Shown here piece by piece: positions 11,365 through 64,000 of a stretch of DNA of 64,000 nt. Source of the stretch: Mobula birostris (lineage: Eukaryota). A model generated the notes under the pieces. The model was not told the origin of the DNA. It saw only the letters and a program-made list of their open reading frames with translations, and ran no database searches. Position numbers and translations under genes: made by a program. Position 1 is the first letter of the stretch. Each line of letters opens with the position of its first letter. The stretch spans positions 86,819,921 through 86,883,920 of the forward strand of contig NC_092383.1 in assembly GCF_030028105.1 (NCBI RefSeq), in the 5' to 3' direction.

Positions 11365-11455
11365 TTTCATGATATGGAAGGTGGGTCGTTGGCTGCTCTT
11401 CGCTCTCCTGATGATCAGCACGAGTTCAGTCGTGTGGTTCACAAGGGAAACTAAG
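11365..11455 (+). pseudogene. Unit A transmembrane exon
   Basis: Acceptor gctcag; encodes FMIWKVGRWLLFALLMISTSSVVWFTRETK; weak donor gtagac; paralog of 47431-47521. Confidence 0.8.
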
Positions 11456-11710
11456 GTAGACTTAAGGAAATCAGTGGAATCAAATATACTGATCATTTGA
11501 GGAAAAACTTTAAAATATATGAATCCTTTCTTATCCTGTAGTCAAATTCAATTTTATGCAGATGATATGGCTTGGCTTTGACATGGTCTCTTGTGTGTAG
11601 AATGAATGGAATACTTGCTTCAGACAGAATTCCATTGTGAGTGACCGTGTGAACTAAAGCAGAGATCCCATTGTTGAAGAATCTGATGGGTTGACCATTG
11701 CCTTTTGCAG

Positions 11711-23539: not shown

Positions 23540-26500
23540 AATTGAACCCAGTTTCAGTTCTGGGACACCATTTCAGATCTGTATTAAAAGTGGAAGACTG
23601 TCAGTTTAGAAAGCAGATATGGTCAGAGAAATGATGTGTCAGATAATAGACGATACATTTTAGTCCCAGGTTATGAAAACCTGACTTATGGACACTTCTA
23701 CATATGAACAAGCTTCTGTTATGTTACTTAATTCAAAATTCCAATGCATGTACACATGTTTACACATGATATGAAGATTGTCGGTGTTGTGGGTGGTACG
23801 GAAGGTTGTTGAACGTTACTACAGGATGTGGTGCTGGGTGAAGAAGTGGTAGATGGAGTTTAACACAGAAAAATGTGATGTGATGCACTTTGGATGATCA
23901 AACTTGAAGGCAGATTACAAAGTTAATGGTAGGATTCTGACCAATGTGGAGGAACAGATGGCTATTGGTCTCCAAGTCCGTAACGTTCTTCAAAGTTGCT
24001 GTGCAGGTTGAAAGTGTGGAAAAGAAGGTGTATGAGGTGTTGGAATTCACTGGTCAAGGGAATTCAATTCAAGAGCGGCAAGGTAATGTTATCGCTCTAC
24101 AGAACTCCGGTTACATCACACTTGGAGTATCGTGTTCAGTTCTGATTGCCTCATTATAGGAAGGTTATGGAAGCTTTAGGGAAGGTGCAGAAGAGGTTTA
24201 ACAAGATGCTGCTTGGATCAGAGAACATATATTATGAGGAAAAGTAAAAGTTGAGTGAGTCAGTGATCTTCTCTTTGGAGCAAAGGAAGGTGAGAGATAA
24301 CTTGATAGAGAGGTGTAGAAGGAGTGTATACGGCATAGACTGAGTGGACAGACAGCTCCTCTTTCTCATGGTGACAATGACCAATACCAGAGAATGTCCA
24401 TTAATGGTGAGTGGAGGGAAGATTAGGGGAGATGCAAGAGGTAGTGTTGTTTTTCATTGATTCTGTTGTATTTCTTTGTTCTACTTTGAATGCCTACAAG
24501 AAAATGAATCTCTGGGTAGCATATGGCGACGTAAATGTAATTTGATAATACATTTACCGTGTACATTTTGAACTTTGATCAGGTGCATGATTACTGACCT
24601 TTCAAAATGCATTTTGAAGAAATGGAGTGAGAAAGAGACACAAGCATGAACATTTCCAGTCACTGTACAAAGGTCCAAAAGGAGAACGAGCAATGGAAAT
24701 TAAAGTTGGGTGCTGAATAAAATGAGTGAGGGGCAAATTATTGCAACTTGCATTGGTCGTCAGGGTATGAATCTGCAAATAGAAGGTGTAACTTTTCTCA
24801 GTACTGATCTGTGACTGTGACCCAAGAACGTACAACAAAGGGACTTGAAAATGAGAGAAGGTGAACTGCATTATTATCTTATAATCAGGGTAGTTTATGG
24901 TGACATCGTACTGCACGTTGATAAATTTAATTTGAATTTTGAACTTTGAAATGCCCTACTCACCAGGAGGAATATCACAAAATATCTTTCACCTGCTATG
25001 TGAGGATGTGAAGCGGTAACACCAGATTCTGTTTGGAGCTCATGATCTCTTCAGTTCAGGGTTATCTGTTGGGTGTTGTTTAGCTGCAGATAACTCCAGA
25101 AGCAGTGGTCCCACTTGTGAATCTGGGCCTGTTAAACCTGAGCTTGTTAATCATCTGAGGGAAGGAACTTGCTTTTGTTTCTTTATTCTGCTGCAAAACA
25201 AGAAATTTTGCATCAGATGGCAGTGTAAATAAATTCGATTCTGATTCTGAATCAGGACATCATAAAGCAATTCTCAAAGAATGTGGTTAGAACTTTTGTG
25301 CCCTTTTACTTGACTTATAAAACTGAACTTAGGGAAGTTCCAATGGATGCCTCATGAAAATAAATTGTTCCATCCTCTTCCTGGACTGCTCCATCACATA
25401 AGACCACAAGACCAGAAGACCATAATACAAAAAGACATGGGAACAGAAGTAGGCCATTCAACCATTCACTCTGTTCCACCATTCAATACTGACAGCTTTA
25501 TTATTCCCCTCAACCACATTCGCATCGTAACCTTTGACAACCTTACCAATCAAAAACTACTTTAAGCTCTGTGTTAAACATACCCAATTACCTGGCCTCC
25601 ATAGCTGCCAGTGGCAGTGAATTCCACAGATTCATCACCACCTGGCTAAAAAATTCCTCTTCATCTCTCACCTAAAGGGACATCCTTGTATTCTGTGGCT
25701 ACACCCTCTGGTCTGAGACTCCCCCACTATTGGAAACATCCTCTCCACATACACTCCATTGGGGTTCCAGGCCCTTCACTATTCAAGAGGTTTCAATGAA
25801 ATTTCCCCATCATTCTGAACTCCAGCAAGTACAGGCCCAGAGCCATCAAAAAATTTTTATATGTTAACCCTTTCATTCTTGGGATAATTCTCATGAACCT
25901 CCTCTGGCCCCTCTCCAATTACAGCATATCCTTCAATGGATAAAGGACCCAAGTTTGTTCACTATTTTCCCAGTGTCATCTGACTAATACCTTATGAAGC
26001 GTCAGTTCTTGGATAACTTCTCAACAACGAATGAAAAAATGTTGTACAATCCCACCATTATGTACATGAGTGGGATTAGGTTTAAACACAGTGGCTAAAT
26101 GGCCTTTTCACTTTTCTTCACCAAATTATTATTGTTGTTCAGCGATCTAGTTGCCGAAACAAAAATGCTTCACTGAAGATGTTTTATATCTCTGCACTTG
26201 TTCTCAACAGCGTATTGAACCATACTACTACTACGTCAACCACTACGTAAGGAACCATAATTGTTGAGAAGTTTTCCAAGAAGTGACAGGACAATGCAGG
26301 AAGAGTCCAGAACATCTGTCAGTGTGTAGCATCCATTGGTACTTCTCATATTCTGTTTGTTAAGACAATTAAATAAAACAGAAGTCCTACCCACATCAAT
26401 GCTTACTTTTTGCATTTTAAAGTGTACAGTATATGTCTGACTGGGCAACAATAATTTCCTTTGCGATAAAAAAAGATTTATCTTCTCTTATCCTTTGCTG

Positions 26501-26830: not shown

Positions 26831-28020
26831 ACTCAGCAGACAGCATCTATAGATATGAATATATTGTCGAGGTATCAGGGCATGACCCTTATTTTACTTC
26901 TTCTCAACTGCCTGTTACTTCCCCTGGGTCCCCTCCTTCTTCCTTTTCTCCTGTGGTGCACTGTCCTCTCTTATCAGATTCCTTCTTCTCCACCCCTGGA
27001 CCTTTCCCACCCACCTGGCTTCACCAGTCACCTTCCAGCTAGCCTTCTTCCCTTCCTCCCAGCTTTTTATTCCAAAACATTCCTCCTTCCTTCTCAGCCC
27101 CAAAGAAAGGTCTTGGCCCGAAATGTCGACTTTCTGTCATTTCCATAGATGATGATTTTCTCCAGCATTTTCTGTGTGTTGACTTCCAGCGAATACAGAT
27201 TTTATCGTGTTTACAATGAAGTCAGGGTTGAACAATTAACATTTTTAGTTAAAGTTCAAGATGGTGCCGATAAGTGGCTACTCTGTGTACAGCTCCAATG
27301 GGAATCATCAAATATTCCCATTTAGGACTGCTACAGCTAATTACACTTTAAATATATCCAATGACTTGGCCTCCACAGCTGTCTGTGGCAGTGAATTCCA
27401 CAGATTTACCACTCTATGACTCAAAAAATTCTTCCTCATCTCTGTTCTAAAGGAACATCCTTGTACTCTCAAGGCTGTTCACTCGGGTCCTAGACTCCCC
27501 TACTATAGGAAACATTCTCTCCACATTCTCTTTATATAGGCCTTTCAATGAGATCATCTCTCATCCTTCTAATCTCCAGTGAGTACAGGCCATCAAACGA
27601 TCCTCTGGGCGGGACTCGGGGTGACGTAACTTTCCTCTCACACTCACAACACCCAAAATGGGCTCTTTCCCTTTCCACCATTAACTTTTCATCATGAATA
27701 CTTTCCGCCATGATTCGCCTCTGCTAACATCTTAAATCAAGCAAAAAATAAAACTTCTAGAGGAACTTCGGGAGTCATGTGGGATCTACGGAGGCAGAGT
27801 GGTCAACATTTCAGAGAAACCCCCTGCTTCGCGACACCTCCAGCCGTTTATTTTTGCTTCAGATTAGAACATTTACTGTTGCTTCTGTCCAATATTTTAA
27901 CACCTCACCATTTCATTTGGTCTTTGGGAATTGTCCAAATGTTTCTGTATTGCTAAGTACAACAAAAAGCTTTTCAGATTGTCATGTACCACACACTAGT
28001 AGGGTCACTGTGGTTTTTTG

Positions 28021-28060
28021 ATCAAACTTCCTGCTGACTTCTTCCTCATTTTTATTTCAG
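28021..28060 (+). promoter_or_regulatory. 40-bp conserved element upstream of the unit B leader (Ets/PU.1-like boxes, or a 3' splice site)
   Basis: 39/40 identical to 61101-61140; contains acttcctg and ttcctcatttt (reverse complement aaaatgaggaa) and ends in tttcag. Confidence 0.5.
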
Positions 28061-28111
28061 AGTTTTTTCTCAGAAGGACAGACAGATCCAGGCCGGGTCT
28101 CTGTGAATAAA

Positions 28112-28151
28112 ATGATGTGGGCTTTGATTCTTCTGATTGGTTTTCTACCTG
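28112..28151 (+). CDS. Unit B exon: signal peptide MMWALILLIGFLP(G)
   Basis: ATG, hydrophobic peptide and phase-1 donor g|gtgagt; joins the V1 exon in frame to give ..FLPGALWAEKY. Confidence 0.9.
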
Positions 28152-29520
28152 GTGAGTGACAACCAGCACTGGACATTCTTTAATCAATGTTTCCTTGGGG
28201 CTGTACATTGTTTCCAGAAGAGTACTTGAATATCTGTAGGCACTAAGGATGTCAGAAATCTGGAGTTCAGAGGAGCTGCTGGAGGAGCTCAGCAGCTCAA
28301 GCAGCATCTGTCAGGGGAGGGGAAAATGTCAACGGTTTGGGTCGAGACCCCTCATCAAGTGTGAGTGGAGAGGGAGATAGTGTAAATAGGAGAGGGGGAG
28401 GTGTGAGACTGGGTCCACTCGGTTGTCAGGGACTGAGGAAGGGTGAAGCACGATAGACAAACGGAATGGGGAGGGAAAGGAGTGGAGTTTGTTGATGAGT
28501 GAATGGGAAAGCAGGTAAGGAGAAAAGGGGAATCGCGTGGAGCCAGGTGGGGAGAGAATATGTCTAGGTGGAGAAATTTTCTGCGGGCTTTCAAGCGAGA
28601 ACATCACGTCTACCATTGACGGAATCTGATCTCACTTTGCAGGGATCACTATGACAGTCGATGTTATTACCTTTCAATCAATCTTTCCTGGGCCATTTCA
28701 GTGGAGCAATTAGTAATGAACATTACTAGATCTGGAGTCAAAGGTAAACCAAGGTGTGTAGGGATGAGAGATTTCTGTCTCTAAAGGCCTTTCTGATCCA
28801 GATGGGATTTTGACACTCTGGTAGCTGATGTTTATCATTACTGATGTGGTTTTTAATTCCAAAACAACTAACAAATTATCTTTAAACTTCCAATGTATCC
28901 TTTTAGAAATAGAAATCACACTTGGATTTCTAGACACGAAAGTGGTAACGACCACTGTTGCACACCTTCTAACTGCACATAGAAACACTTGACAAACACA
29001 AAAGATAAAATTTCCATCAGAACCAGAAGACACAGTTTCAGACATCATGATGGGTTTCTTTCTGAAGTTTATAAACGTGTCTGTTAGTGGAGGATGTCAG
29101 GACATGGAGAGAATTGAAACATGATCTCAAATGGTCCTACCAATCCCCATTCCAACTTCTGAGTTCCCTGCATTCCGAGACGCACACTCAGGAGCATCCC
29201 AAATGAATTCTCTGGGAACTTAGTGTACACTTGAAAGGGTGACATGGTCTGAGGTAATTGATAGACTACATTGTGGCTCTCCTTCAATACTGCATTAGAA
29301 ATTCAGCCCTGGATTTCTGTTCAGGATTCTACAGTGGGAATTTAATGTGCTGACACAGTAAAAGCACTGACTGCACTTCAAACCAAAGTCATTGGCTGTG
29401 CTGTCATGGACCACAGGCCGGATATGACCTGGACCTGCTTTACCATCGTGTTCAAAGTTATTTGTTTGCATTAAGTTGTTCCTTTCCCCTCAAATCTGAA
29501 AATGCCTCTCTCAGTTTCAG

Positions 29521-29835
29521 GTGCATTGTGGGCAGAGAAATATGTAAGAGGAGTTATGGGAAGAGCGATTACAATCGATTGTTACTATGAGGCAAAGTAC
29601 CGCTCACGCACAAAGTATTGGTGCCATGGATGGACTCACCAATGTTCAGTTTTAATGGAAACAAATGGGCAACACAGACGGAGTGGACGAGTATCAATCA
29701 CAGATGACCCAGAATGGGGAATATTTACTGTTACTGTGGAGGATCTTCACTCTGGAGATACAGGATGGTACAGCTGTGGAATTTCAACACCAGGTCATGA
29801 TCCGATATTTAATGTACATTTACAAGTATCTGATG
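29521..29835 (+). CDS. Unit B exon: V-type Ig domain 1 (CD300/pIgR/MDIR-like)
   Basis: tttcag acceptor, gtagg donor, 315 nt, phase 1-1. ITIDC..KYWCHGWTHQC..DTGWYSCG gives four Cys including the C-C' pair typical of CD300/pIgR V domains. Confidence 0.95.
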
Positions 29836-32500
29836 GTAGGTTTCTCAGTGATTGACTTTGTGCCTTCAGTAAAATAAATGTCTTATCCATGTTTCCCCTG
29901 GGAAGGGTCAGCGTATTAGATGTCCTGGGGAGTGACGATGTGCTGATCCCAGGGTTAAGCTTGTACAGTGGAGAAATGTCCATCTTGTGGATGTGTCTGA
30001 AGAACAGCAATCTCCTCCTCCTCCTGCTCAGCCTCTGCACAGATTACAAGACCTGTGTCCTGACTCTGTCCATCTCTCACTATTTCTGCATTAATATCAG
30101 TGCCATATGTTTCCCTCTCTATGGCAGGTCACTGAATCCAGTCACAATTTCATTTCCGCCTGAAAGCCACTAAACATGTGATGGGTATCTCACAAGTTGC
30201 TGCCTTTAAACACTCGGTGGGCACCTCATTTGGTAACTTTTATACCAAATAAAGTGGCCACTGAGCATCTGTTCAAGGTCTTCTGCTGCTGTGACTCATT
30301 CACTTCAAGCTTTGATGTCTTGTGTGTTCAGATGCTCTTCTGCACACCACTGTCATAAAATGAGGTTATTTGAATTTCTGTCATCTTTCTGTCAGCATGA
30401 ACCAGTCTGGCCATTCTCCTCTGACCTCTCTCATTATCAAGGCATTATTGTTCACGGAATTGCTGCTCACTAGATATTTCTTGTTTTTCACACCATTCTG
30501 AAGACTGTTAAACATGCAAGTCCCAGGACATCAACAGGTTCTGAGGTACTCAAACCGCCCCGTCTGACTCCAACTATCATTGCATGGTCAAAGTCACTAA
30601 AATCTCATTTCCTCCCCATCTGATATTTGTCCTGAACAACAACTGAATCCCTTGACCATAGGCACTGTATCTGATGGTAGGTTTCTCAGTGAGTAACTTT
30701 GTGCCTTCAATGAAATAAATCCATGTTTCCTCTGGGAAAGGTCAGAACATGAAAACTCTTGGAGAGCGATGATGTGCTAATCCCAGGGTGAAGCCTGTTG
30801 AATGGAGAAATGTCCAACTCGTGACATGTCTGAAGAACAACAATCTCCTTCTCCTTCTCCTCCCACTCTGCCTCAGCACAGTTTAAAAGATCTTTGTCCA
30901 GACACTGTCCATCCCTCACTATCTCTGTATTAATATCATTGTCAAATACCATCTATAAATTTGCTGATGATACAGCCATTGTTGGTAGAATCTCAGATGG
31001 AGATGAGAAGGCATATGGGAGTGAGATATGCCAACGAGTGGAGTGGTTTCGCACCAACGAACTTGCACATGACGTCAGTAAGATGAAAGAGCTGATTGTG
31101 GAATTCAGGAAGGGATTGTGGACTTCAAGAACACATACCAATCCTCAAAGAGGGATCAGAAGTGGAGAGAGTGAGCAATTTCAGGATCCTGGGTGTGAAG
31201 ATCTCAGATACCTAACCTGGTCCCAACATATTGATGCAATTATAAAGAAGGCAAGACAGCGACTATACTTCATTAGGAGTTTGAAGAGATTTGGTACGTC
31301 AACATATACACTCAAAACCTTCTATAGATGTACAGTGGAGAGCATTCTGACAGGCTGCATCACTGTCTGGTATCGGGGGTGGGGGGCGGGCTACAGCACA
31401 GGACCGAAAGAAACTGCAGAGGGCTGTAAATTTAGTTGTCTCCATCTTGGATACTAGTTTACAAATACCCAGGACATCTTCAAGCAGTGGTGTCTCAGAA
31501 AGGCAGCATCCAATATTAAGGACCTCCAGCATCCAGGGCATGCCCTTTTCTCACTGTTACCATCAGGTAGGAAGTACAGAAGCCTGAAGGCACACATCAG
31601 CGATTCAGGTACAGCTTCTTCCCCTCTGCCACCTGATTCCTAAATAGACATGGAACCCATAAACACTACAACACTTTTTTAATATATATTATTTCTGTTT
31701 GTTGCACAATTTTTAACCTATTCAATATGTTTACTGTAATTGATTTACTTACTTATTATTATTTTATTATTTTTTTCCTTCTTCTTCTATATTATGTATT
31801 GCATTTAGATGCTTCTGCTAAGTTAACAAATTTCACAACACATGCCAGTGATAATAAACCTGATTCTGATTCTGAAATGTTTCCCTTTATACAGCGGGTA
31901 GTTTTTTCCTGATAGCCATCAAACATGTGACAGATATCTCACAAGCTGCTGTCTTTAAATACTCAGTGGCCACTTTATTAGGTACCTCCTATAACTAATA
32001 AATTGGCCAAGGAATATGTTCATGGTCTTCTGCTGCTGTGGCCCATTCACTTTAAGCTTTACTGTGGGTTGTGTGCCCAGATGCTCCTCTGCATAACTGT
32101 CATAGCACGTTTATTTGAATTTCTGTCATCTTTCTGTCAGCCTGAAACTACCTGGCCATTCTCCTCTGACCTCTCCCATTGACGTCATTTTTGCTCACAG
32201 AATTGCTGCTCACTGGATACTTTTTGCTTTTTGCACCATTCTCTGTAAACTCTGCAGACTATGTATGAATATTCCTGGAATTCAACAGTTCCTGAGATAC
32301 TCAAACCTCCCTGTCTGGCACCAGCTATCATTCCATGGTCAAAGTCACTAAGATCACATTTCTTCCCCATTCTGATGTTTGGCCTAAACAACAGCTGAAC
32401 CTTTTGAGTATGTCTGCATGTTTTTATGTACTGTGTTACTGCCAGATGATAGACTAATTAGATATTTGCATTAACAAGCAGGTGAACAGGTGTACCTAAT
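29826..32500 (+). repeat. internal tandem duplication in unit B intron 2 (29826-30660 versus 30667-32500)
   Basis: Both copies start gtatctgatggtaggtttctcagtg and share downstream sequence and a MITE; the second copy carries a LINE at about 30920-31870. Confidence 0.8.
30920..31870 (+). mobile_element. Rex1/Babar-like LINE 3' portion
   Basis: ORF 30894-31457 YKFADDTAIVGRISDGDE..KARQRLYFIRSLKRFG..FYRCTVESILTGCITVWY; gattct-repeat tail. Confidence 0.85.
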
Positions 32501-32569
32501 ACATTGGCAGAAGAGAGTTTGATTTTCAGATGTTCATTCAGTGTCTGATTGTTCAATTCCTTCCCACAG

Positions 32570-32890
32570 AAACTGTGTCTGTTCCTGTGCTTCGAAATCT
32601 GTCACCAGCAAATGTCTCCCATCTCGGTGGCTCCGTGTTAGTGTCCTGTGAGTCTCTCCAGGGATCCCTTCCCATTCAGTACTCATGGTATGAACAAACC
32701 TCATCTGGGGATCAAATGATCTCAGACACCGATGAACTGGTTCTACCTTGTCAATCCTTAGACCTCCAAGCCCATCAATATTACTGCAAAGCCTCAAATA
32801 GGCTTGGAATAAAATCCAGCGGAATGCTAAATGTGACAATCTTCAACAGCAGAGAGATCTGCAGATATGTGACAAGAATTAATGGCACCA
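32570..32890 (+). CDS. Unit B exon: C2-type Ig domain a
   Basis: cccacag acceptor, a|gtaagt donor, 321 nt, phase 1-1; VSVPVL..VSCESLQGSLPIQYSWY..YYCKASN (Fc-receptor-like C2). Confidence 0.92.
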
Positions 32891-33286
32891 GTAAGTTCTC
32901 CTTTCAAGGAAGGATACATTTAAAGATTTCTTTTTGTTACTCTGTTACTGCTGTTCTTATACTTCTACTGAGGGTAAGGAATTTCTTTGCATTCGTAGAA
33001 GCTACACATTGCAGCCTCCATGGGGTAGATCAAAGTGTAGTCAACAGTTAAGTCTGTGACTTCTCCTGGAAAATGTGGAACATCTTAAACATAGCTGGAC
33101 TTGCAGCTCCAGACAAATTGGTGGCATTCCATTCATACTTCTGGTTTTTGCACTGAAGATACTAGAATGAGTGTTGAATCACGAGACAGTGGCACTGTCA
33201 TAAAAGGAAAAGGAAGGACATATAATATAGCAAGAATTTGTGGGAAGTTAGAGAATTGGGGAACTTTAAAAAAACCAACATAGTCA

Positions 33287-33700
33287 TAGTCATACTTTAT
33301 TGATCCTGGGGGAAATTGGTTTTCATTTCAGTTGCACCGTAAATAATAAATAGTAATAAAACCATAAATAGTTAAATAGTAATATGTAAATTATGCCAGT
33401 AAATTATGAAATAAGTCCAGAACCAGCCTATTGGCTCAGGGTGTCTGACCCTCCAAGGGAGGAGTTGTAAAGTTTGATGGCCACAGGCAGGAATGACTTC
33501 CTATGACGCTCTGTGTTGCATCTCGGTGGAACGAGTCTCAGGCTGAATGTACTCCTGTGCCCACCCAGTACATTATGTAGTGGATGGGAGACATTGTCCA
33601 AGATGGCATGCAACTTAGACAGCATCCTCTTTTCAGACACCACCGTGAGAGAGTCCAGTTCCATCCCCACAACATCACTGGCCTTACGAGTGAGTTTGTT
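33287..33700 (-). mobile_element. Rex1/Babar-like LINE 3' end, second family (tatgac-repeat tail)
   Basis: ORF 33428-33763 ..RKSFLPVAIKLYNSSLGGSDTLSQ is nearly identical to 58851-59087. Confidence 0.8.
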
Positions 33701-34870
33701 GAAGAATGTAACAAGAAAAGCCAAAAGGAGAGAAAAGATTAAATATAAAGGGAAAATAGTCAATAATATAAAAGAGGAGACTAGAAGATTTTCAGATATA
33801 TAAAGTGTAAGAGAGAAGCAAGAGTGGATATTAGATCACTGGATAATGAAGCTGGAGACATAGAAATGAGGTACAAAGAAATGGAGGATGGTCACTGAGG
33901 AAGACACAAGCAGTATGACAGAAATTCAGCAATGTCAAGGGGCAATGTCAAGGAGTGAGTGTAGTTGCTCTTACTAAGGAGAAGGTGCTTGGGAAGCTGA
34001 GAGGGCTGGAGGTAGGTATATAGGTCACCTGGCTCAGATGGTCTACACCCCAGGGTTCTTAAAGAGGAAGCTGAAGAAATTGTGGAGGCATTAGTAGTGA
34101 TCTGATTCTGGGTTGGTTCTGTGGGACTGGAATATTGGAAATGTTACTCCACTCTTTCAGAAGAGAGGGAGGCAAATGAGAGGGAATTATAGACCAGTTA
34201 GCCTGACGTCAGTGGTTGGGAAGGTGCTGGAGTTCATTATGAAGGATAGGATTTCAGGGTACTTGAAGGTGCATGATGACATTTGGTTTCATTATGGGGA
34301 AATCTTGCCTGAAAAATCTGTGGGAATTCTTTGAGGAAATAATAGGCAAGACAGATAAAAGAGAGTGGATATTGTTGACTTGGATTTTCAGAAGGCCTTT
34401 GACTAGGTGCCACATATGAGCCTGCTAAACAAGATAAGAAGCCAGGTATTACTAGAAAGATTCTAGCATGGATGAAAGATTGGGTGACTGGCAGGAGGCA
34501 AAGAATGTGAACAAAATGGTGCCTTTTTGTTTGCCTGTCAGTGACTTGTAGTGTTCCACAGGGGCTGGTGTTAGGACTGCTACTTTTTATGGTGTATGTT
34601 AATCACTTGGATGGCAGGTTTGGGGATAACAAGGTCAAAGTCAAAGTTTGCACCGTTTGTTGTCCATTGATTCTGGTTACAGTTACTGTACTGTAAATTT
34701 GCTAAGTATGCCGCAGCAAAAGAATCTCAGGGTTGTGTGTGGTGAGATGTACGCACTCTGATAATAAATCTCTACTTTGACTTTGACTTTAAGGGGAATC
34801 TCAGTGAATCCAATCGAATATTGAAAGGCCTAATTAGAGTGGATTTAGAGAGAACGTTTCCTTTAGTGGG
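33700..34870 (+). mobile_element. degenerate CR1 fragments
   Basis: ORF 34113-34334 NVTPLFQKRGRQMRGNYRPVSLTSVVGK. Confidence 0.7.
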
Positions 34871-35326
34871 GCAGAGATATGAGAAGGGAGCCCACACCTT
34901 CTAATTGAGTCTATGCACGGAAATGATCAAGGCTGCTGCATTTCGTGATTGAGAATAGAATAATAAACCTTCAAAATCCATGGGAAACACTATAGAGATG
35001 CCTGTTGTAGGCAAGGAATGGGCTGGTGTTCAGCTTGCTGCTCCACAGGGTTTACTCGTCTCTGTGCTGAACTGAGGCTGCAGCTTGCAATTAACAGGCT
35101 CCTGAATCGGCTGCAGTGATAACTGGCTTTGTGTCTGTGACCCATTTTTGCGAATTTCAGTTCCGAACGTAATTTGCTTACTTTTATGGTTTGCATGATT
35201 TTTATTTCTGCATATTGGGTGTTTGACAGTGTTTTTTTAATGGGTTCTATTTGGTTTCTTTATTTTGTGGGTTCCTGTAAGGAGACAATCTCAATGTTGT
35301 ATATAGTATACATACTTCGATAATAA

Positions 35327-35790
35327 CAACGCCGTCTCTGCTGACTGGGCCACGTACACCGAATGTCAGACGGGAGGATCTCGAAAGACCTGCTGTACGG
35401 GGAACTGGCCTCCAGCAATAGAGCACAAGGATGGCCCCATCTTCGTTTCAAAGACGTTTGCTAGAGAGACATGAAGTCATTGAAAATGAACGTCGAGAGG
35501 TGGGAGGGCATTGCAAGCGATCGCTCTCACTGGAGGCTGGAACTACGCAGAGGTCTAAAAAGAGGAGAAGAGAAGCTGAGGCTTGCTGCTGAAGAAAAGT
35601 GCACTCGTCGGAAAAACAGCACCAAGACAACACTGAGGGACAGCGCCTTCAAGTGCAGTCGCTGCAGCCGAGACTGTCACTCCCGTGTGGGCCTCTACAG
35701 CCACAACAGACACTACTCTAACACAGACTGAAGCGAGACTTTCCAGGCGCAGATCCATGGTCTCGCGAGACTAATGGATGCCACCACTTT
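35327..35790 (+). mobile_element. RTE-clade LINE 3' fragment
   Basis: WLGHVHRMSDGRISKDLLYGEL..RFKD and a C-terminal CSRCSRDCHSRVGLYSH zinc motif. TSD gataataa (35319-35326, 35791-35798); the paralogous site at about 63333 is empty. Confidence 0.85.
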
Positions 35791-37875
35791 GATAATAAAT
35801 GTACTTTGAACTTCAAACATCTCAGTTGAAGTGTAAGCTGATTGGCTGTGATTCCAAAAGCTATCACACCTGTGCAGTGAAATAGAATTCTGAATTTAAC
35901 CTTTCAAAAGTGTGGTCCAGTTCAGAGAAGATGCAGCAGAGTCATAGAGTTACAGGTTTTGGAAACAGGAGCTTCAGCCCAAGTCCATAGTCTCTTCCTG
36001 AGCTTCTCCCATTTCCCTGTATTTGGTCGGTATGCTTCTCAAGCTTTCCTGTCCATGAACTTTTCCAATTGTATTTTAAATTTGTGCCCACCTCTAGCAC
36101 TTCCTCTGACAGCCTTTTCCATGTACACACTGCTCTGTGTGGAAAACACTGCCCCTCCAGGCCCTCTGACCTTCAGTCTAGACTCTCTAGTTTTCGACTC
36201 TCCTACCCTAAGATAAGGAATGCTACCATACTTTTGCCCCTCTTAATTTGTGAACCTCTATAAGGTCACCCCTCAGCTGCCCTCACTTCAGGGAAAACAG
36301 TCCCAGCCTATCCATAACCCAAACCCTCCAGTCCCAGCAGCATCTTTGTGAATGTTTTCTGTCACCCTCTTGAATTTAATCACACTCTTCCCCTGGAACT
36401 GCACAGAGTAGTCCAGATGAGATCTTATCAATGTCCTTTATAGCTGTAACATGCCATCCCAGCTGTACTTAATGCCCCATCCAATGAAGGCAAGCAGATC
36501 GTATGACTTGTTCACCACTTAGTCCACCTGTGTTGCCACTTTCAGGGACCACTGTCATTGCACATCTCGTTCTCTACAGTGTAAGTTGTGCTCTTGTTTA
36601 ATTTCCCAAAGTGCATCACTCCACACTGCCTGAGTTCAATTCCATCAGCCATTTCACTGGCCACATTCCTAGTTCAAAGTTCAAAGTAAATTTATTGTCA
36701 AAGTACCTATATCACAAACAACTAAGAGATTCATTTTCTTGCAGGTACCCACAAAACAAAGTAACACAGTAGAATTCATGACAAGACACACAGAGCAAAG
36801 ACTGACAGACAAGCAAAAGATGACAAATCGTGCAAATCATAACAATATGTAAACAAATAATACATGGAACATGAGAGGCAGAGTCTCTGAAAGTGAGTCC
36901 ACAGCTGTGGAGTCAGTTCAGTGCTGCGGCGAGTGAAGCCAATCCTGGAGCACGATGGCTTAAGGGCAACAATTGCTGGCAAACCCAGCGGTGTGGGACC
37001 CAAGACTCCTGCACCTTCCGCCTGATTGTAGAAATGAGAAGAGAGGGAGACAGGTCAAATGCAGGCAGACGGGACGGGCTCAGGTGGGGGAGTCATGCTA
37101 GCACAGAGTAACGGGGCTGAACCCTGGTTCATTTTCCAGGTCCCATTGTAAGCTTAGATCTTTCCATTGTCCACCACACTACTCTGTCATCGGCAACTTA
37201 TTAATCACGTCACCTACATTTTCATTCCAAATTATTAATGCAGATGACAAAAAACTTTAGTTGGCAAACAACAGCACTGATCTTGATGGCACCCCAGTGG
37301 TGATAAAGTCAGATGTTGTCAGTAGACCAACAACCACAAAGTGACTATTTCCACCAAGCCTCTTCAGTATCCATCCAACTAGCTTACCATGTGATCTCAC
37401 ATTACACATCAGTCTGCTATGCAGGGTCTTGTCATAAGCCTTGCTAAACTCATGTGCTAAACTCTATTGCCCTGTTCTCAACAGTTCCTTTGATCATCTC
37501 TTCACAAAAATCTCAAGACAATTTTTTTTTGAGAGATGATTTCCCACACACAAAATCAGGTTGACCATCCAAAATCAGAGCTTCCCTTTGCAAGTTCAGG
37601 TGATCTATTGTTACACAATTTACCCACCACTGACTTCAGGCTCACCTGCCTGGAATGGGACTGGATCAGTTACCCATTGACTCAGAAATGTGGAAACAGA
37701 CTGAGACATTAGTGGGCAGTGATAATGATGACTCCAATCAAATAAAAATCATGAGTTGTGAAGAGCTGTGAGCTCGTGTTGAGGGACGATGCTGTTGTCT
37801 TCCCAGACCACATGCAGTCTGTATAAGTTTGATTTTACCTGTCCATTTTCTGAAGAACTTCTCCCTCAGTTTCAG

Positions 37876-38190
37876 GTGCTTTATGGGCAGAAGATAAAGT
37901 AAGAGGAGTTGTGGGAAGAGTGATCACAATCGATTGTCACTATGCAGCAATGTACCGTTCACACACAAAGTATTTGTGCCGCATGTGGGATCGCCAATGC
38001 ACATCATTAGTGAATACAAATGGGACAAATGAGCAGTATGGAAGAATGACAATCAGAGATAACACATCCCAGGGAATATTTACTGTTACTATGGAGAATC
38101 TCGTCTCTCAAGATACAGGACTTTACAGATGTGGAATTACAACATCTGGCAATCATCCAGTGTTTGATGTGCATCTACACGTGTCTGACG
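37876..38190 (+). CDS. Unit B exon: V-type Ig domain 2
   Basis: tttcag acceptor, gtagg donor, 315 nt, phase 1-1; ALWAEDKVRG..IDC..KYLCRMWDRQC..DTGLYRCG. Confidence 0.93.
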
Positions 38191-38589
38191 GTAGGTTTCT
38201 CATTGATTGACATTATGTCTCCATTGAAATGTCTGATCCATATTTTCCATGGGAAGACCCAGGGCAGCACCAATATTCTGAGGCTCCGTTAGGCTGAGGC
38301 TCAACAGACTCCGCTCAGTCCCCCTGGAGCAGGGCAACCCAATCCCCATCTTCTCTCAGGGATCAGTCACACCCTCTCCAGCCCCACTGCCTCTATCTCC
38401 CTCTTTCTCTCTCCCTCCATACCAGTCAAGGAGCTCCGAGTCCCTACCTGTAGTGCCTGCTGACCTGCCTGACCATTCCCATGTGGAAAATGCAGAAATG
38501 GAACTACAGAAGAAGATTGAACATGGAACAGCCAGCACAGAAGTGATGATACTGAGGATGCGTTTGGCCAACATGTGCTCCACTGACCA

Positions 38590-39040: not shown

Positions 39041-39533
39041 TGATTTTATGATGTCAGTCTAAGCTAATTCCATCTGCTTGCAAATGTCCATAATTACACC
39101 TGTGCCAAACTTTTTGTGGGTTAGTCTAAATGCATTCTAAATATTGTTGTTATACCTGTTCCGCCTTCTTGCCTGACAGAACAGTCACCACACTCATTGT
39201 AGCTAAAGAACTTGTCTCACAAATCTCCTTTAAATTGCCCACCTCTCACCTTAAAACAATATTTGCATTGATTTTTTAAAAACTCCACTGGAGACTGTCT
39301 CCTTGTTGCTGAGAGAGATTGCACCCTGACTTTCACACTGACCCATCACATTCTCAATATCATCACTGCTGTCCTGATCCTGATAATGGCAGATGTGGCG
39401 GTTCAGGCATCTGGGAGGATGCAGACACACAGATGGATTTAGAGGTGAGACACCCACCTGCAGATCCTGGCTGAGATGCAGAGCTGCTGAAATCTTTATT
39501 GATTTTCTGATGTTCACTGATTCTTTCCCACAG

Positions 39534-39845
39534 AACCGGTGTCTGTTCCTGTACTTCAATTTCTGTCTCCTGCAAATGTCTCGTGTGTTGAGGGCTCCGT
39601 GTCAGTGTCCTGTGAGTCTGTCCAGGGATCCCTTCCCATTCAATACACATGGTATGAAAACACATCGTCTGTGATCTCTGTCACCAGTAAACTGGATCTA
39701 CATTGTCAATCCTTCAACTACCAACACCATCAATATTACTGCACAGCCTCGAATACTCGTGGAGCAAAGTCTAGTGAAATAGTGAACGTGTCCATCTACA
39801 ACAGGGAAGGCAATTGCAGTTTTGTGATTCAATTCACTGGCACTG
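39534..39845 (+). CDS. Unit B exon: C2-type Ig domain b
   Basis: cccacag acceptor, g|gtaagt donor, 312 nt, phase 1-1; VSVPVL..VSCESVQGSLPIQYTWY..YYCTASN. Confidence 0.92.
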
Positions 39846-40949
39846 GTAAGTGGTGGAGGGTGCGAATCATCAGGGTGATTGATTGAGTATCATGTACCGT
39901 TTTCAAGATTCAAGATTGCTTAAAGTCATTTCTAGTGCTCAAGTGTAAGGGTCCAATACAGCACAAAAACACAATATGATATAGAACACAACAATAAATA
40001 AACAAAATAATTATAAATACATAAGATTGTTTATATGTAGTGACTGTGTATGTCCATAAAGTGACACTAGGCATAATAGTGTTTGTACCTAAGGTGGGTG
40101 ACATGAAATGATAACGTAGTGGTGGTGCGTGTTGTGGAGGGGTGGGTTAGTGGGTTGAAGTGTTAATCTGTTATGTTCTTTAGGCTGCATTCAGGCATTT
40201 CTGGACTATTCTGTCTCCGCTGTGACAATTCTTGCAGAGAATCGAATGCCATATTCAATAGCTGAGAACTGAGTCTTTCACCAGAGTACTTCCTGTCTGC
40301 AGCCAGTTCTTGCTGACGATGGTGGCTTTGTGTCTAAGCAGCTGATGTTTCTGGTTGATGACTGAGATTGTTTCATCCTTGAAAAAGAGCAAATACTCAA
40401 ACTCGCTCCTTCTGGATCTATAAATAGTTGCCAGTGGTTTGTTTCGTGGAAAATAGAGAGAATTGTAGAGACTAAAGAAACAGTGGAAACCACCTGCAGT
40501 TAGTGCAAGAACTCAGGAAGGATGGCCGCAGCAGGCTGTTTAGTCTCTGAAGTCTACTCCATTATTCAATATAATCCTGGCTGACCTATACTTGGCCGTC
40601 CCTGCTCCTCTATGCCCTTTCCCACTTCTCCATTCGCTGAACTATATCAAAAATATATACTTTCTGTTTAAATATCTCTACCACTCCACTTTCCCAATCT
40701 TCCAGGTGGAGAATTCCAAGGACTGTGAAGAAGTTCCTATGCATCTAATTTTAAATTACCCAATCCTAATCTTGCTACTATGCCTCCTCATTTGAGACAC
40801 TCTGACAATTGAAACTGGTTTGCCCACAGAGGTCAGTGGGTGGTAGTAGATAATGTATTCTGCCAGGAGATGGTGACCAGCGGTATTACACAGTTATCTC
40901 GTGACTTTTGATCTCAATTCTCTGATTAATGGAGGCTTGTTCCGTTCAG

Positions 40950-42890: not shown

Positions 42891-45800
42891 TCTTATGGAG
42901 ATAGACAGAGTGCAGAACTGGTCTCTGAAGAGGCAGATGGAATTCTATCTGAAAAAGTGTGAAGCTATATGTTAGGTAAGATGAAATCTTAAAGCAAAGT
43001 ACAAGATTAATGGCAAGATGTTGGGGTCAAAAACCAAATATCTTTTGAAGTTGACACACAAGTTGATAGGATGGTGAAGTAGGCACCTGCTATGAGCCAC
43101 AAGGTAATGCTAGGGCTGTATGAAACTCTGGTTAGTCCACACTTGGAGTATAGTGTTTAGTACTGGTCACCTCATTATAAAAAGAATGCGGCAACTTTAG
43201 AGGTTTTAGAGGAGATTCAGCATGATGCTGCTAAATATATCAGGTATATTTAAGAGACTCTTAGATTAGCACATGGATGGTTGTGTGCTGTGTAGAAGGA
43301 AAGGTTAGATTGATCATGGAGTAGGTTTAAGGCTGTGACATCATGGGCTGAAGGGTCTGTACTGTGTTTTACTGTTCAATGTTGTATATAAAAGGGATAT
43401 AAGGGGCAGTATTTTTACACAGAGATTGGGGGGTTATCTGGAACAAATTACTGAATGAATTGGTAGAGGTGGATAACATAAAAATGACTTTAAAACATTT
43501 CTGGAAAAGAGATATGAACTTAATATTGGCAAGAGAGACGAGATGAGTTAAACAAACTCATCAGAGTGAATGAGTTGAGCTAAAGGGCCTGTTCCCATAC
43601 TGTATAACTGTCTGATGTTCAATGATGTTATTAGAACAGGAACACAAGAGATTCTGTAGATGCTGTAGACAAGATCAACGTTTACAAAATGCTGTAAGAA
43701 CTCAGCTGGTCAGGCAGCATCTATGCAAAGGAATAAACAGTCAAAGTTTCAGGCCAATACCCTTCATCAGAAAGATCTCGGCCTGAAATGTTAACTGTTT
43801 ATTCTTTACGTAGACGCTGTCTGAACTGTTGAATTCCTCCCGCATTTTACATTATACCAGGAGTTGTCTTTTCATTGAGAAAAGAAGCATTACCCTGTCG
43901 TATCAACAACTGAACTTGGTCCAATATCTCCACATACACTCAGTGCAGAGATGTATTCATCCCTCTGGTGAATGTTGCGACCCCAACAACAGATCTCCCA
44001 GAGCTGGTAGTTGTCATTTGCCTGGCTGGAACTTTCACTTCCAATTAAATAGAGTTTGTGATCCCAACGATCCAAGCCCCATAACTTCCCCAGGAACATG
44101 GGTGTTCGCATTTGCACAGGAAACAGAAATTACTCACCTCCATGTAACCAAGCAACCCTTTATTCAAGGAAAGAGTTTCCACCTGTCAACCATGTACTCT
44201 TGCTTGGCTGCATTTGCAAAGCACATGAGACTGAATTATCTTTCCTTGCCTCAACAGGAAGTGAATATTCATGTGAAACATTTACGACAGTATCAACTGT
44301 AAGGTAAACCTCTTGATCTAGTTCTGCTTAAGGGTACAATGTTCTTATTGCTGGCACTATGATTGGTCCTGTTCCCATATGAGAGATAATTAAGGGAGAA
44401 GTTACAGTTTTACTTGTACAGAATGCCTGTGAGAGTATTGTTTTCAGTTCTACAACCAGTGGTAAAACCAACACTCTCCTACATGTTTTAACCCCAAGAC
44501 TCCAAGATAAATAAATAAATCTCTCTAAATACTTTGTAATAACTTAGACTTCAAAGTTGATATTAGTTCATATTTTAGAAGTAAATAATTGTAGTGTTTA
44601 TTAATCATCCAAAGGGGAAAGCTTCAATGAACTTCATTTGCCTCATCAACACCCACAAAATACTGAAGGAATTCAACAGGCCAGGCAATATCTTCACTTG
44701 CCACATAATTGAAATTTTCCCACAACCAATGTAATAACTTTCAAGGACTCTTCAATTCATGTTCTCAATATTTATTATTTATTTATTATTTCTTTTTCAA
44801 ATTGCACAGTTTGTTGTCTTCTATACTCTGGTTGAATGCATTACTTGGGTAGTTTTTCATTAATTCTGTTCTGGTTATTAATCTATAGATATTTTAAGTG
44901 TGTCCACAATAAAAAAGAATCTCAATTGTGTATGCTGACATTTATGTCCTTTGACAATAAATCTACTTTGAACTTTAAGGCTCAGAGTTCATATCATGGT
45001 GTTGTGTAATAGGTGCTTGAAACAACCTTCCAACCAACTTTCTTATAAAATTGTATGACTGCGTACCTAACAGATTTGATCCAGTTTTAAAGCCAATATT
45101 GATTTGATTTATTTTTTTTTTACTATTTGCTGCTCTATATGGCATATATTTGATACATAGAGACTTTTCATTTCATTATTTCTGAGAGCATCTTCACTTT
45201 ACAGAATTATTTTACATGTGCTTAAGACATTTGCACAATTCTGTGCAACAAACCCTATCTTCCAGCACATGGCCCAAAGCCTTCTGTGGAGATCTGACTT
45301 AAGACCACATTCAGACACTTCACCAAACACTGACTGTGACTCTGTTTCCACCACTCTCTGGGTAAAAACAATCCATTCAAATCCCTTCTAAATCTATGTC
45401 ATCTAGTTTTATTCACCTCTGAGAATGGGGAAGTTTGCTGTCGCCTATCCAACCTGTACATCTCATAATTTTGCATCCCTCAGTCATATCCACTCTTAAC
45501 CTCATTCTCCACGGAAAGCAAGTCTAGTTTCTTATAATGTTTATTCTTAGGAAATTAGAATCATTTGCTGCACTCAAAGAGTAGCCATGCAGTGTTTTCC
45601 ATAACTACTCCTTCACTAACCTCATCCCATGGTGTGAGGATGAGTTTTGTTTGTTTGTCAAACCCTAGGATGCTTTTTCCGCTTGTAATATTCACTGATG
45701 TTTACTGACTCAAGGATTGCAGGTAGAGCAATAAGCAATAAGGTAGCAACTTGCAGAGTTGACCAATGTCTCAACAACAGTAATTGCAGGAAAAAAATGA

Positions 45801-47117: not shown

Positions 47118-47430
47118 GTAAAGGCACTTCTATACTTCATTATTTTTCCTAAATCCATTTTCATCTACTACTTCCTAATTCAGAGAACTCATTTGTACAT
47201 GACCAAGTCACAGTGATTGGGTCTGTTACTGACAATCACGGGTTGTTAACCCTCCCGAATCCTGCTGTTCAGTCAATACTAGTGTAGCCTTCTAGCTGAA
47301 CTCCTCTGACTCTCTTTATTTACCTCACTCCGCACCACAAATGTTACAGAGGGAACAGAAGGTTAATGTTTCAAATACAAAGCCATCTCGTTTCATCTCA
47401 TCAGTTCTGTATCTCTTCCCCTTTGCACAG

Positions 47431-47521
47431 TTTCGTGATATGGAAGGTGGGTCGTTGGCTGCTCTTCACTCTGCTGTTGATCAGCACTATTTCAGTCACA
47501 TGGTTCACAAGACAAATTAAG
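47431..47521 (+). CDS. Unit B exon: transmembrane segment
   Basis: gcacag acceptor, aag|gtaggt donor; FVIWKVGRWLLFTLLLISTISVTWFTRQIK. Confidence 0.85.
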
Positions 47522-47769
47522 GTAGGTTTATGGACATCAATGGAATTTGCTTTCAAACATACTCATCATTTGAGGAAAGACATTTAAACACATTTCATTT
47601 TCCTTATCCAATGGTCAATCCAAAGCTATCTGCAGATGATATTGTCAAGATGTTGACACACTGTATGTGTGCAGAATGCTTGATGTGAATATATTGAACT
47701 CCAGACACAACTCTAAAGCAGAGTTCCCAGTGTTGATGAATCTGATGATTTGACCTTTGCCTTTTACAG

Positions 47770-47817
47770 AGACACAATGAATCAGATCCTCACAGACTGG
47801 TCCATAAGGTAAAGTGA
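47770..47817 (+). CDS. Unit B last coding exon: tail RHNESDPHRLVHKVK*
   Basis: tttacag acceptor. gtaaagtga (VK*) is conserved in unit A, as is the downstream sequence with ATTAAA (47923-47928 / 11858-11863). A donor at 47809 is an alternative reading. Confidence 0.7.
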   Translation, partial: RHNESDPHRLVHKVK

Positions 47818-53022: not shown

Positions 53023-53719
53023 TAACTCATTCCAGTTTATAAGCAAAGACTTGAATTGCATATGTCACAATACTATCACTTAAAGTAAAAATACAAAATA
53101 AGATTCACATTTCTCAGCTCTCTTGTTTTCCTTTGAATTCATTTATTGTTTTGAACTACAAACCATAACAGGGACCATTCATTGATCTCAGTTTCAGGTC
53201 AGGGACCCCTCCTCAGATCTGGGTTAAAAGTGGAAGAGTGACAGTTTAGGAAGCAGATCTGGTGGGAGGAATGATGTGTCAGATAAAAGACTATTTAGGC
53301 ACAGGCTACCTACATTAAGAAAAAAATGAAGTATTCTAAAGGAAAGATGGCACAATCATGACTAACAAGAGTGTGATTACTGACCTTTCATAACATACTT
53401 TGTAGGAGGGAAGAGAGAAAGAGACACGGCATCAACATTTCCAGTCACGGTACAGAGGTCTTAAAGGAGAACAAGGAATGGAAATAAAAGTTGGGTGCTG
53501 AACAAGATGAGTGAGCTGCAAATTACTGCAACTTGCATTGGTCATCAGGACATGAATCTGCAAATACAAGGTGTAACTTTTCTCAGTACTGATCTGTGAC
53601 TGTAACCCATGAATGGACAATAAAGGGTCTTGAAAATGCATTATTATCATTATAATCAGGGTAGTATATGGTGACTTACTGCACTTTGAATATCAATTTA
53701 ATTTGAATTTTGAACTTTG

Positions 53720-60767: not shown

Positions 60768-61193
60768 CTCCACATAGGCTCTTTTGCTTTCTACCATTAA
60801 CTATTCAACATGACTCACCACGGCTAACATGTTAAATCAAGCAAAAAATAGAAGATCTGGAAGAATCAGGTGGGATCTGCAGAGGCAGAGCAGTCAACAT
60901 TACAGATTAATCCCTGCTTCCTCGAACCATTTACTGCGGCTTCAGATTAGAACACTTGCTGTCGTGTCCAATATTTTAATTCTTCTCACCATTTTGTTCA
61001 GTCTGGGAAATATTTAAATATTCCTGTCTTGCTAAATATAACTGACAGCCTTTCAGATGTCACACACCACACACCAATTGTGTCACCCTTTGTTTTTTTG
61101 ATCAAACTTCCTGCTGCCTTCTTCCTCATTTTTATTTCAGTTATTTCTCGCTGAGGACAGATAGGTCGTGGCTGTTTCTCTGTGAATAAAAAG

Positions 61194-61230
61194 ATGTGGT
61201 CTTCGATTCTTCTGACTGGTTTTCTATCCG
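61194..61230 (+). CDS. Unit C exon: signal peptide MWSSILLTGFLS(G)
   Basis: ATG, hydrophobic peptide and phase-1 donor g|gtgagt; flanks homologous to the unit B leader. Confidence 0.85.
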
Positions 61231-62291
61231 GTGAGTAACAAGCTGCACTGGGTACTTCCATAATCAGTGTTGGTTTGGGGGTCAGACACCATTTTCAGAA
61301 CAGTACTTGAATATCTGTAGACACTAAAGATGTCGGAAACTGGAGTTCAGAGTGCACTCCTGGAGGAATTCAACGGAACAAGCAGCATCTGTCAGATGGA
61401 GAGGAAATATTAATGGTTTGGGTTGAGACTCTGCTTCAAGTGTGAGTGGAGAGGAAGAGGATGTAAACAGAAGAGAGGGAGGCGTGAGACTGGGTCCACT
61501 AGGTGGTTGGGGACTGAGGAGGGGTGAAGCACGACAGTCAAATGGAAAGGGGTGGGGTTTGGACATGGGTGAGAAATGAAAGCAGATAAGGAGAAAAGGG
61601 GGAATAGTGTGTAGAAAGGTGGGGGGTGGGGGGAGAAAACATCCAGCTGGAGAAATTTCCTGCAGGCTGTTAAGCCGGAACATCGGGTCTACCATTGGTG
61701 GAATCTGCAGGAATCACTACAACAATCGGCATTATTGTGTTGACAGCAGTGTCTTCCCTGGGCCATTTCAGTGGGGCAATTAGTAAAGAACATTACTAGA
61801 TCTGGAGTCAAAGGTAAACCAGGGTGGGTGGGGAGGAGAGATTTCTGTCCTGAAAGGCCTTTCCGATCCAAATGGGATTTTGACATTCCAGTAGTTGAAC
61901 TTTATCATTATTGATATGTGATTTTTGTATTCCAGACATAAATAATTCATTGGATTTAAACTCTCAATGTATCTTTACAGAAACTGAAGTCACACCTGGA
62001 TTTCTAGACACTAAAGTGGTAATGACTACTGTTGCACCACTTTCCAACTACACATAGAAATACTGGTCAGGTACAAAATATAAAATTTCCATCATAACCA
62101 GAGGGCACTGTTTCAGACATCATGAGGGGTTTCTTTCTGCAGTTTATAAACTTGTCTGTAAGTGAGGAGGAAGTCAGGTCGTTGGCATCATGGAGAGAAT
62201 TGAAACATAACCTCAAATGATCCTACCAACCCCCGACTCAACCCCGAAGTTCCCCAGAATCCGAAACATACACACAAATCCCAAATAAATT

Positions 62292-62973
62292 TTGGGAGGA
62301 GGAGAATATGGCAGCACGACGCAGCGCGCAGCGGCCACTCCGGTGAATGATATCTGTTATCTGTCAAGTAGGGTGCCATGCACAATCCTGATTTGATAGA
62401 GACAGACATGAGAGCACGCAGTCAAATCTGGAGAAACTTCTGAAATGCCTGCTTCGCTGCCGCTGCTACTGTGTGATCCAGAATCTCCGGAGAAGGCTCT
62501 GAGTCCTCGGCTTTGCTTGTTGCTCGGCAGCCAGGGTGGGTTTAAGGCGCTCGGCAGAGGATGATGCTCGGGAGGCTGTATCGGAGGGGCTGGTGGGAGG
62601 CTCGAAGTTTTCGGACGGACTCAGAGTCGGCTGTGGTCGGGTGTTTCCAATGCATCGGCAGTTGTTGGCGCCTGGAGGTTTATGATAGGGAGAGTTTCTC
62701 CCTTTTGCCGCCTGCTATCAGGACTATCGGAAGTTGATCGGAACTTTGAGACTTTTTTTTACCGTTCCCACGGTCTGCTCTTTATCAAATTATGGTATTG
62801 TTTTGCACTGCTGTAACTATACATTATAATTATGTGGTCTTGTCAGAGTTAGTCTTTGGTTTGTCTTGTTTTTGTGATATCACTCTGGAGGAACATTGTA
62901 TCATTTCTTAATGCATGCATTTCTAAATGAAAATAAACCAGGACTGAGTGTCCTCATAATCTAAAATCTAAGC
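62292..62973 (+). mobile_element. 682-bp non-autonomous retroelement in unit C intron 1
   Basis: TSD taaatt (62286-62291, 62974-62979); aatcta-repeat 3' end; site is empty in A (about 9885) and B (about 29205). Confidence 0.75.
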
Positions 62974-63089
62974 TAAATTAGCTGGGATCTTTGTGTACAT
63001 CTGAGGTAACTGCAAGTTCAAAACTGCGGCTCTCCCTCAGTACTGCACTAGAAGGTCGGCCCTGGGTTTCTGCTTAGGACTCTGGAGTA

Positions 63090-63228
63090 TGATAACCCTT
63101 TCATTCCTGGAATCATCCTTGTGAACCTCCTCTGAACCCTCTGCAAAGTCAACTCATCTTTTCTGAGACGAGGAATCCAAAATTGTTCACATCAAGGTGA
63201 GGCCTCTCCAGTGCCTCAAAGCTTCACC
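63090..63228 (-). mobile_element. CR1 fragment at the unit C rearrangement junction
   Basis: Reverse complement resembles ..RKDELTLQRVQRRFTRMIPGMKG. Confidence 0.7.
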
Positions 63229-63403
63229 ACATTGGGTGTTAGAGCATCTTTTTTTAGTCAGTTCTATTGATTTTCTTCTCGTTTGTGGCTGACTGTAAGG
63301 AGGCGAATCTCAAGATTGTATATAACATATTTGATAATAAGTGTATTTTGAACTTTGAAATCTGAAATCAAAGTGCAGTCTGATTGGTGGTGACCCCATA
63401 AGC

Positions 63404-63646
63404 TTGAGGAAAATCTTTTTCCACACAGTTGTGGTTTTGTGGAATGCTCTGCCTCAGAGGGCAGTGGAGGCCAATTCTCTGGATGCTTTCAAGAAAGAAA
63501 TAGACAGAGCTCTTAAAGACAGCAGAGTCAAGGGATATGGGGAGAAGGCAGGAACGAGGTACTGATTGTGGATGATCAGCCATGATCACAGTGATGGCAG
63601 TGCTGGCTCAAAGGGCCAAATAGCCTACTCCTGCACCTACTGTCTA
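63404..63646 (+). mobile_element. CR1 3' end insertion
   Basis: CR1 tail flanked by ataagc on both sides; the paralogous B site at about 35860 is empty. Confidence 0.7.
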
Positions 63647-64000
63647 TAAGCTGTCACACCTATGCAATGGAATAGAATTCTGACTTTAAACTTCCAGAAG
63701 TGTGTTCCAGTTTAGAGAGGGTGCTGCAGAGTCAAAGAGTTATAGGTCATGGAAACAGGAGCTTCACCCCAAATCATCCATGCTAACTATGGTGTCTTCC
63801 TCAGCTTCTCCCATTTCCCTTCATTTGGCTCATACCAATCTAAATCTTTCCTATATATGATCTTGCCCAAATGTATTTTAAATAGTGTATTTGTATCCAT
63901 CTCTAGCACTTCTCCACATACACACTGCTTTGTGCAGAAAACACTGCCCCTCCAGGGCCTCTCAGACTTTGCCCCCTCACTTTCAGTCTCGGCTCTCTAG

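Follow-up and report, generated by a model that had tools for sequence, protein, structure and literature searches.

A probable intron-to-intron deletion of two immunoglobulin domain exons in a modular domain immune-type receptor gene of Mobula birostris

The modular domain immune-type receptors, or MDIRs, were reportedly first described by Cannon et al. in Immunogenetics in 2006. In PMC3031540 they are characterized as a CD300/TREM/pIgR-like family. Variable domain number is a defining trait of MDIRs. They are organized, like the array presented here, as a multigene cluster whose members differ in domain number, and two-domain V-C2 members exist. The membrane anchor of family members bears a charged residue in the activating type, while the inhibitory type has ITIMs in its tail. 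Skate MDIR5 resembles gene B of our array in its layout, including a charged membrane anchor of the WKVGRW type. A further comparison is offered by a Mobula hypostoma protein of 528 aa annotated as 'polymeric immunoglobulin receptor-like' (XP_062921367, in the following P0243), which shares about 93% identity with B when the exons are compared one by one and whose gene has a similar span of about 25.4-25.5 kb.

The window, i.e. the whole stretch of 64,000 nucleotides of Mobula birostris DNA that was analysed, contains genes of Ig-superfamily receptors in a tandem array that includes the units A, B and C. Pfam V-set domains were matched by V exons at 10234-10587, 29502-29855 and 37911-38210, and two further exons (32530-33051 and 39539-39886) matched Ig_2/Ig_3. 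When the V2 exon of B was used as query in an exhaustive HMMER search, 2277 relatives were returned, and a sample of 271 homologues was retrieved by this type of search combined with word-based searches. The latter led to ray and shark proteins with the automatic names 'polymeric immunoglobulin receptor-like', 'CMRF35-like' and 'Fc receptor-like'. The best protein matches of the window genes came from Mobula, and MDIR2, MDIR3 and MDIR5 of the clearnose skate were direct matches in the homologue searches. By sequence homology, these direct matches identify the family of units A, B and C as the known MDIR family.

Architectures in the sample of 271 homologues range from one to more than eight domains, the commonest being the two-domain V-C2 arrangement (37 proteins). 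Domain number also varies inside the window, as V1 of A is directly followed by a transmembrane (TM) exon, four domains are present in B, and C is without V1 and C2a. All Ig exons of the array are of phase 1-1. A strict SGALWA-like start is kept in 80 of the 110 internal V domains of relatives, and most of the others begin with near variants. At the internal V domains of ray and shark MDIR-like proteins this motif is a fossil of module duplication. Since the signal-peptide end SGALWA has been retained in each V exon, such an exon is able to follow a leader.

Gene B served as the reference copy, and its exon model was obtained exon by exon by tblastn with XP_062921367 (Table 1). All exons are open and B reads intact from one exon to the next. 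Pfam recognized two V-set domains in this unit (E 1e-11 and 4.5e-9) in addition to Ig_2/Ig_3 domains. The V2 exon, of phase 1 at its 5′ boundary, opens with (x)TT TCA GGT GCT TTA TGG GCA, equivalent to xSGALWA, and reads xSGALWAEDKVRG. V2 exons have kept (V/I)SGALWA, the end of a signal peptide, at their start. Protein searches did not find a protein of the manta itself with at least 90% identity to B (28112-53498), so B may be missing from the public manta annotation. Intron 3 of B harbours two inverted copies of a repeat, R1 (35110-35862 and 36672-36927), which are about 74% identical and lie about 0.8-1.4 kb apart. Pairing of the two copies could fold the pre-mRNA into a hairpin, or the copies could favour rearrangements. 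An origin of intron 3 as an internal duplicate of intron 1 was considered and rejected, as the V1 and V2 regions become similar no more than about 15 bp ahead of the exons (29506 corresponding to 37861).

Unit A (8925-11470; 24618-24713) looks like a decayed one-domain derivative. Its homology to B begins at 8925, past the position of the leader, LINE ORFs occupy 7904-8632 upstream of it, and a peptide scan with annotated ray leaders did not find a leader-like peptide in A. The V1 exon has suffered a 1-bp deletion after ALWA, leading to an in-frame TAA. A TM-type exon (11360-11470) is located only about 770 bp after V1, and from this direct succession it follows that C2a, V2 and C2b are missing from A as well. 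In Mobula hypostoma, the entire 45-kb locus of P0243, the B orthologue, is spanned by a 1350-residue product annotated on the other strand. It is probably a chimeric model stitched together from inverted MDIR exons of both sides.

Unit C and the MDIR gene B are paralogs by descent, as the leader, upstream region and introns of C match those of B. Self-BLAST aligned 60774-62291 with B 27658-29209 (76.6% over 1586 bp), so that about 420 bp on the 5′ side of the leader are still alignable to B. The leader exon, already noticed in the preliminary description of this DNA, is intact including its donor, and its position is now fixed at 61194-61230. The encoded peptide, MWSSILLTGFLS, aligns with the B leader, MMWALILLIGFLP. 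A conserved ATG at 62122 (MRGFFLQFINLS; 9681 in A and 29047 in B) was rejected as leader start because the annotated ray leader type, MWxxILLIGFLP, sits at 28112 in B and at 61194 in C. The ATG opens a mini-ORF (MRGFFLQFINLS / MMGFFLKFINVS) followed by GT within intron 1 of all three units. It mimics a leader exon without being the annotated one and could mislead gene finding.

According to the preliminary description, C follows intron 1 of B almost up to V1, passes through a CR1 fragment of 140 bp and continues as intron 3 of B, leaving about 5.9 kb of B with V1 and C2a without counterpart. This outline holds, with several refinements. At 63085-63088, equivalent to a point 180 bp before the V1 exon of B, the intron-1 homology of C stops. 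The CR1 fragment is an antisense piece of ORF2 of about 145 bp, and the stretch lacking a counterpart (29336-35205) measures 5.87 kb. Similarity to intron 3 of B extends to the end of the window and reaches B position 36202 instead of 36150. It is collinear but interrupted by a 459-bp insertion in B (35327-35785) and a 241-bp insertion in C (63405-63645). Within intron 1, C also has a 707-bp insertion found in C only (62292-62998), which had not been mentioned. No other copy of this insertion was detected within the window at E <1e-5. Its first half is CpG-rich and its end lies near an AATAAA.

The junction itself is occupied by the CR1 filler, detected by tblastn with the CR1 ORFs of the window as queries. 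It is devoid of its 3′ end toward 63088 and, next to R1, of its 5′ part. By blastn, the filler (63088-63233) resembles at least five CR1-like copies in the window (55495-55338, 41269-41127, 25860-25962, 6373-6505 and 14717-14599). Beyond the filler, self-BLAST paired C 63223-63340 with B 35206-35326 (75.6%, E 2e-17), C 63330-63404 with B 35788-35862 (76%) and C 63643-63997 with B 35853-36202 (73.9% over 364 columns, E 1e-61). An Ig exon was not detected between positions 60000 and 64000.

Table 1. Features of gene B and unit C (positions within the window; P0243, Mobula hypostoma XP_062921367).
Feature	Position	Strand	Evidence
B leader, MMWALILLIGFLP	28112-28150	+	92% to P0243 (12/13; P0243 residues 1-13)
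B V1 exon	29515-29838	+	93% to P0243
B stretch without counterpart in C, 5.87 kb	29336-35205	+	end of intron 1, V1, intron 2, C2a, first 2.3 kb of intron 3
B C2a exon	32567-32889	+	98% to P0243
B V2 exon	37870-38189	+	~90% to P0243; Pfam V-set E 4.5e-9
B C2b exon	39531-39850	+	~98% to P0243
B stalk exon	44254-44301	+	79% to P0243 (19 aa)
B TM exon, SFVIWKVGRWLLF..., charged, activating type	47429-47521	+	84% to P0243
B short exon	47764-47808	+	87% to P0243
B last exon	53406-53498	+	90% to P0243
C upstream/promoter-side region	60774-61193	+	paralogous to B 27658-28111; within self-BLAST match
C leader exon starting ATG..., MWSSILLTGFLS with one extra base (phase 1), then donor GTGAGT	61194-61230	+	peptide scan with annotated ray leaders; alignment to B leader
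C intron part 1	61231-62291	+	paralog of B intron 1 (28151-29209) and A 8936-9807; self-BLAST 77-85%
Unclassified insertion of 707 bp, private to C intron 1	62292-62998	+	absent from A and B; three-way alignment
Last intron-1-type segment of C	62999-63088	+	90% to A 9925-10014; 76% to B 29248-29335
Junction filler, internal antisense CR1-like LINE ORF2 C-terminal fragment (CEQFWIPRLRKDELTLQRVQRRFTRMIPGMKGLSYS), ~145 bp	63084-63233	-	tblastn 63191-63084, 64%, E 6e-13
C segment paralogous to B intron 3, with the 3′ portion of repeat R1 and a unique flank	63223-63404	+	B 35206-35326 plus 35786-35862
C-specific 241-bp CR1 3′-tail insertion	63405-63645	+	7-bp direct repeats ATAAGCT at 63398-63404 and 63646-63652; B empty site ~35858
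C paralog of B intron 3 including old repeat R2, to window end	63646-64000	+	B 35853-36202

Our reading of this arrangement, to which we assign a probability of about 0.75, is that C is a tandem paralog of B, itself an MDIR gene with four domains, and that a single deletion of approx. 5.9 kb joined intron 1 to intron 3 in C. A leader spliced to V2 and a two-domain receptor would be the predicted consequence. Judged from the sequence, it is highly probable that the junction is real and was made by deletion, and the alignments support well that approx. 5.87 kb with V1 and C2a would have been lost from a B-like ancestor. The intron-1-like and intron-3-like parts of C are equally diverged from B (about 74-77%), suggesting that the ancestor of C held both introns and hence was B-like. 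V1 directly follows the shared intron-1 segment in both A and B. A is 90% identical to C right before the breakpoint, yet continues into V1. Moreover, all complete annotated relatives begin with a V1-type domain. Retention of V1 in A and B, equal divergence of the two intron parts and the V1-first relatives thus favour a deletion in C over an insertion in B. They likewise agree with the earlier preference for deletion from a B-like gene over an origin of B by fusion.

The CR1 filler suggests how the deletion might have come about. Retrotransposition keeps the 3′ ends of inserted elements and truncates their 5′ ends. The filler lacks the 3′ end where it faces intron 1 and the 5′ part where it faces R1, and two steps can therefore be proposed. 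An antisense CR1 would have inserted into R1 of intron 3 in the lineage of C, its 5′-truncated end now abutting the position equivalent to B 35206. Subsequently, an end-joining deletion that began in intron 1, at the equivalent of B 29335, would have reached into the inserted CR1, removing V1, C2a and the CR1 3′ end together. Non-allelic recombination between two CR1 copies is disfavoured, because a retrotransposed copy in intron 1 would have kept the 3′ end that the filler lacks on this side. A single end-joining deletion between introns would be tolerated because the exons are phase-symmetric and the V exons carry the signal-peptide end.

The leader of C ends in phase 1, with one extra base before GTGAGT, and the V2 exon of B opens with two codon-completing bases. 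With these matching phases a splice between leader and V2 would be in frame. When the V2 exon of B is used as a stand-in, the joined reading is MWSSILLTGFLS-V-SGALWA/EDKVRG..., the slash marking the end of the signal peptide. The earlier suggestion that the ALWA start of V2 completes the signal peptide therefore fits the B exon in sequence and phase (...VSGALWA/EDK). By the spacing in B, the next exon of C would be V2-type and located about 1.67 kb past the end of the window, and we consider it fairly likely that an exon of this type follows the hybrid intron. Splicing from leader to V2 would give a normal secreted N-terminus, and the resulting receptor would have two domains, V2 and C2b, and a charged membrane anchor of the activating type.

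Whether C is a working gene is a separate question. A competing explanation, which is directed only against the functional part of our reading, accepts the deletion and regards C as a pseudogene whose remaining exons are broken or missing. We give it a substantial chance, somewhat short of even. Decay would have a precedent in the same array, where copy A is without leader and carries a frameshift in V1. None of the 271 retrieved homologues has the leader of C. Also, no plus-strand gene has been called in the corresponding flank of Mobula hypostoma, over the 10 kb downstream of B's orthologue. The signal core of C, SSILLTGFLS, is less hydrophobic than that of B; against this, a Hemitrygon gene employs a very similar leader, MWSSILL. 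The intact ATG and donor of the C leader, the alignable 420 bp before it and the exon-by-exon integrity of the sister copy B also speak against a dead relic. On balance, it is possible but doubtful that C is intact and makes the predicted two-domain receptor. The V2-type module is internal in every complete annotated relative. A leader-V2 start was not found among the complete annotated ray models, and the V2-first models are all N-terminally truncated predictions. The most far-reaching proposal, that C is intact and expressed as a two-domain activating MDIR with the V2-type module outermost and that any module might become N-terminal after an intron-to-intron deletion, seems unlikely to us.

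A junction within a dispersed repeat, in a tandem array of similar genes, is a setting prone to misjoins, and two paralogous copies might have been joined wrongly by the assembly inside the CR1 repeat. We consider such an artefact very improbable. The paralogs differ by 10-25%, far beyond what long reads would confuse, and the CR1 piece is just 145 bp long with unique sequence on either side. Furthermore, the intron-3-like part of C is 74-76% identical to B and has an insertion of its own. It is not a copy of B and must come from a separate existing locus.

The main risk to our reading comes from the repeats, from which most of 63088-64000 is derived. The tail of R1, TTTGATAATAAATGTACTTTGAACTT, occurs in four copies in the window (35788+, 36677-, 44950+ and 63330+). 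After this tail, the next 120 bp or so are common to B and C only, while the copies at 36677- and 44950+ run into unrelated sequence. Past this flank, B and C both go on into the old repeat R2, and order and spacing agree between them. On top of the shared mosaic each copy has acquired private insertions. The one in B (35327-35785, 459 bp) is bordered by a 13-bp target duplication, ACTTYGATAATAA, and C has the empty site; the one in C (63405-63645) is bordered by the 7-bp duplication ATAAGCT, and here the empty site is found in B. A shared mosaic overlaid by private insertions indicates that both stretches come from one ancestral intron. On this alignment evidence the match between C and intron 3 of B is one of descent and not a chance meeting of repeats. 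The view that nothing more than a cluster of transposable elements, from families also present in intron 3 of B, breaks up intron 1 of C, with the remainder of this intron and V1 lying beyond the window, draws on the abundance of CR1 pieces, R1 tails and R2, of which weak copies exist at 795-884 and 43646-43513, but is very improbable given the non-repeat flank, the unrelated surroundings of the other R1 copies, the reciprocal empty sites and an internal CR1 fragment without 3′ end that simple insertion could not produce.

A deletion of V1 and C2a as we propose it for C would provide a clean, dated example of a change in domain number in a modular immune-receptor family. Birth-and-death evolution with gain and loss of Ig modules is an established principle in MDIR, KIR and LILR-type families, and C is thus an illustration rather than a surprise. 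The deletion is an ordinary event for the MDIR family, and the sole possibly new point is the V2-type domain at the tip of the receptor. If the shortened gene is expressed, a normally internal domain would be placed there, which could alter ligand reach. Should the V2-first product prove true, the family would possess an inherent means of quickly reshaping its receptor ectodomains.

Compared with described MDIRs, the predicted product of C, whose Ig exons are themselves predicted, differs in its first domain, which is of the membrane-proximal V2 type and not of the V1 type. A related case is the predicted isoform X3 (P0125) of Mobula hypostoma, in which one Ig exon (V2) is skipped in frame by splicing from a complete gene. 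Here V2 is omitted at the level of splicing, whereas in C V1 and C2a are lost at the level of DNA. The in-frame skip suggests that symmetric phases tolerate the loss of modules. Mammalian CD300 and pIgR share with the ray genes V-set domains with an extra cysteine pair (YWC...C). The similarity is distant only, and the ray genes, in which V and C2 domains alternate, are not pIgR orthologues. The human KIR2D genes arose from a three-domain KIR through loss of one Ig exon. As proposed for C, a phase-symmetric Ig exon was deleted or inactivated among tandem immune-receptor paralogs, which shortened the receptor while leader and tail were retained. KIR2D receptors belong to an unrelated Ig family, however, and the analogy is one of mechanism only.
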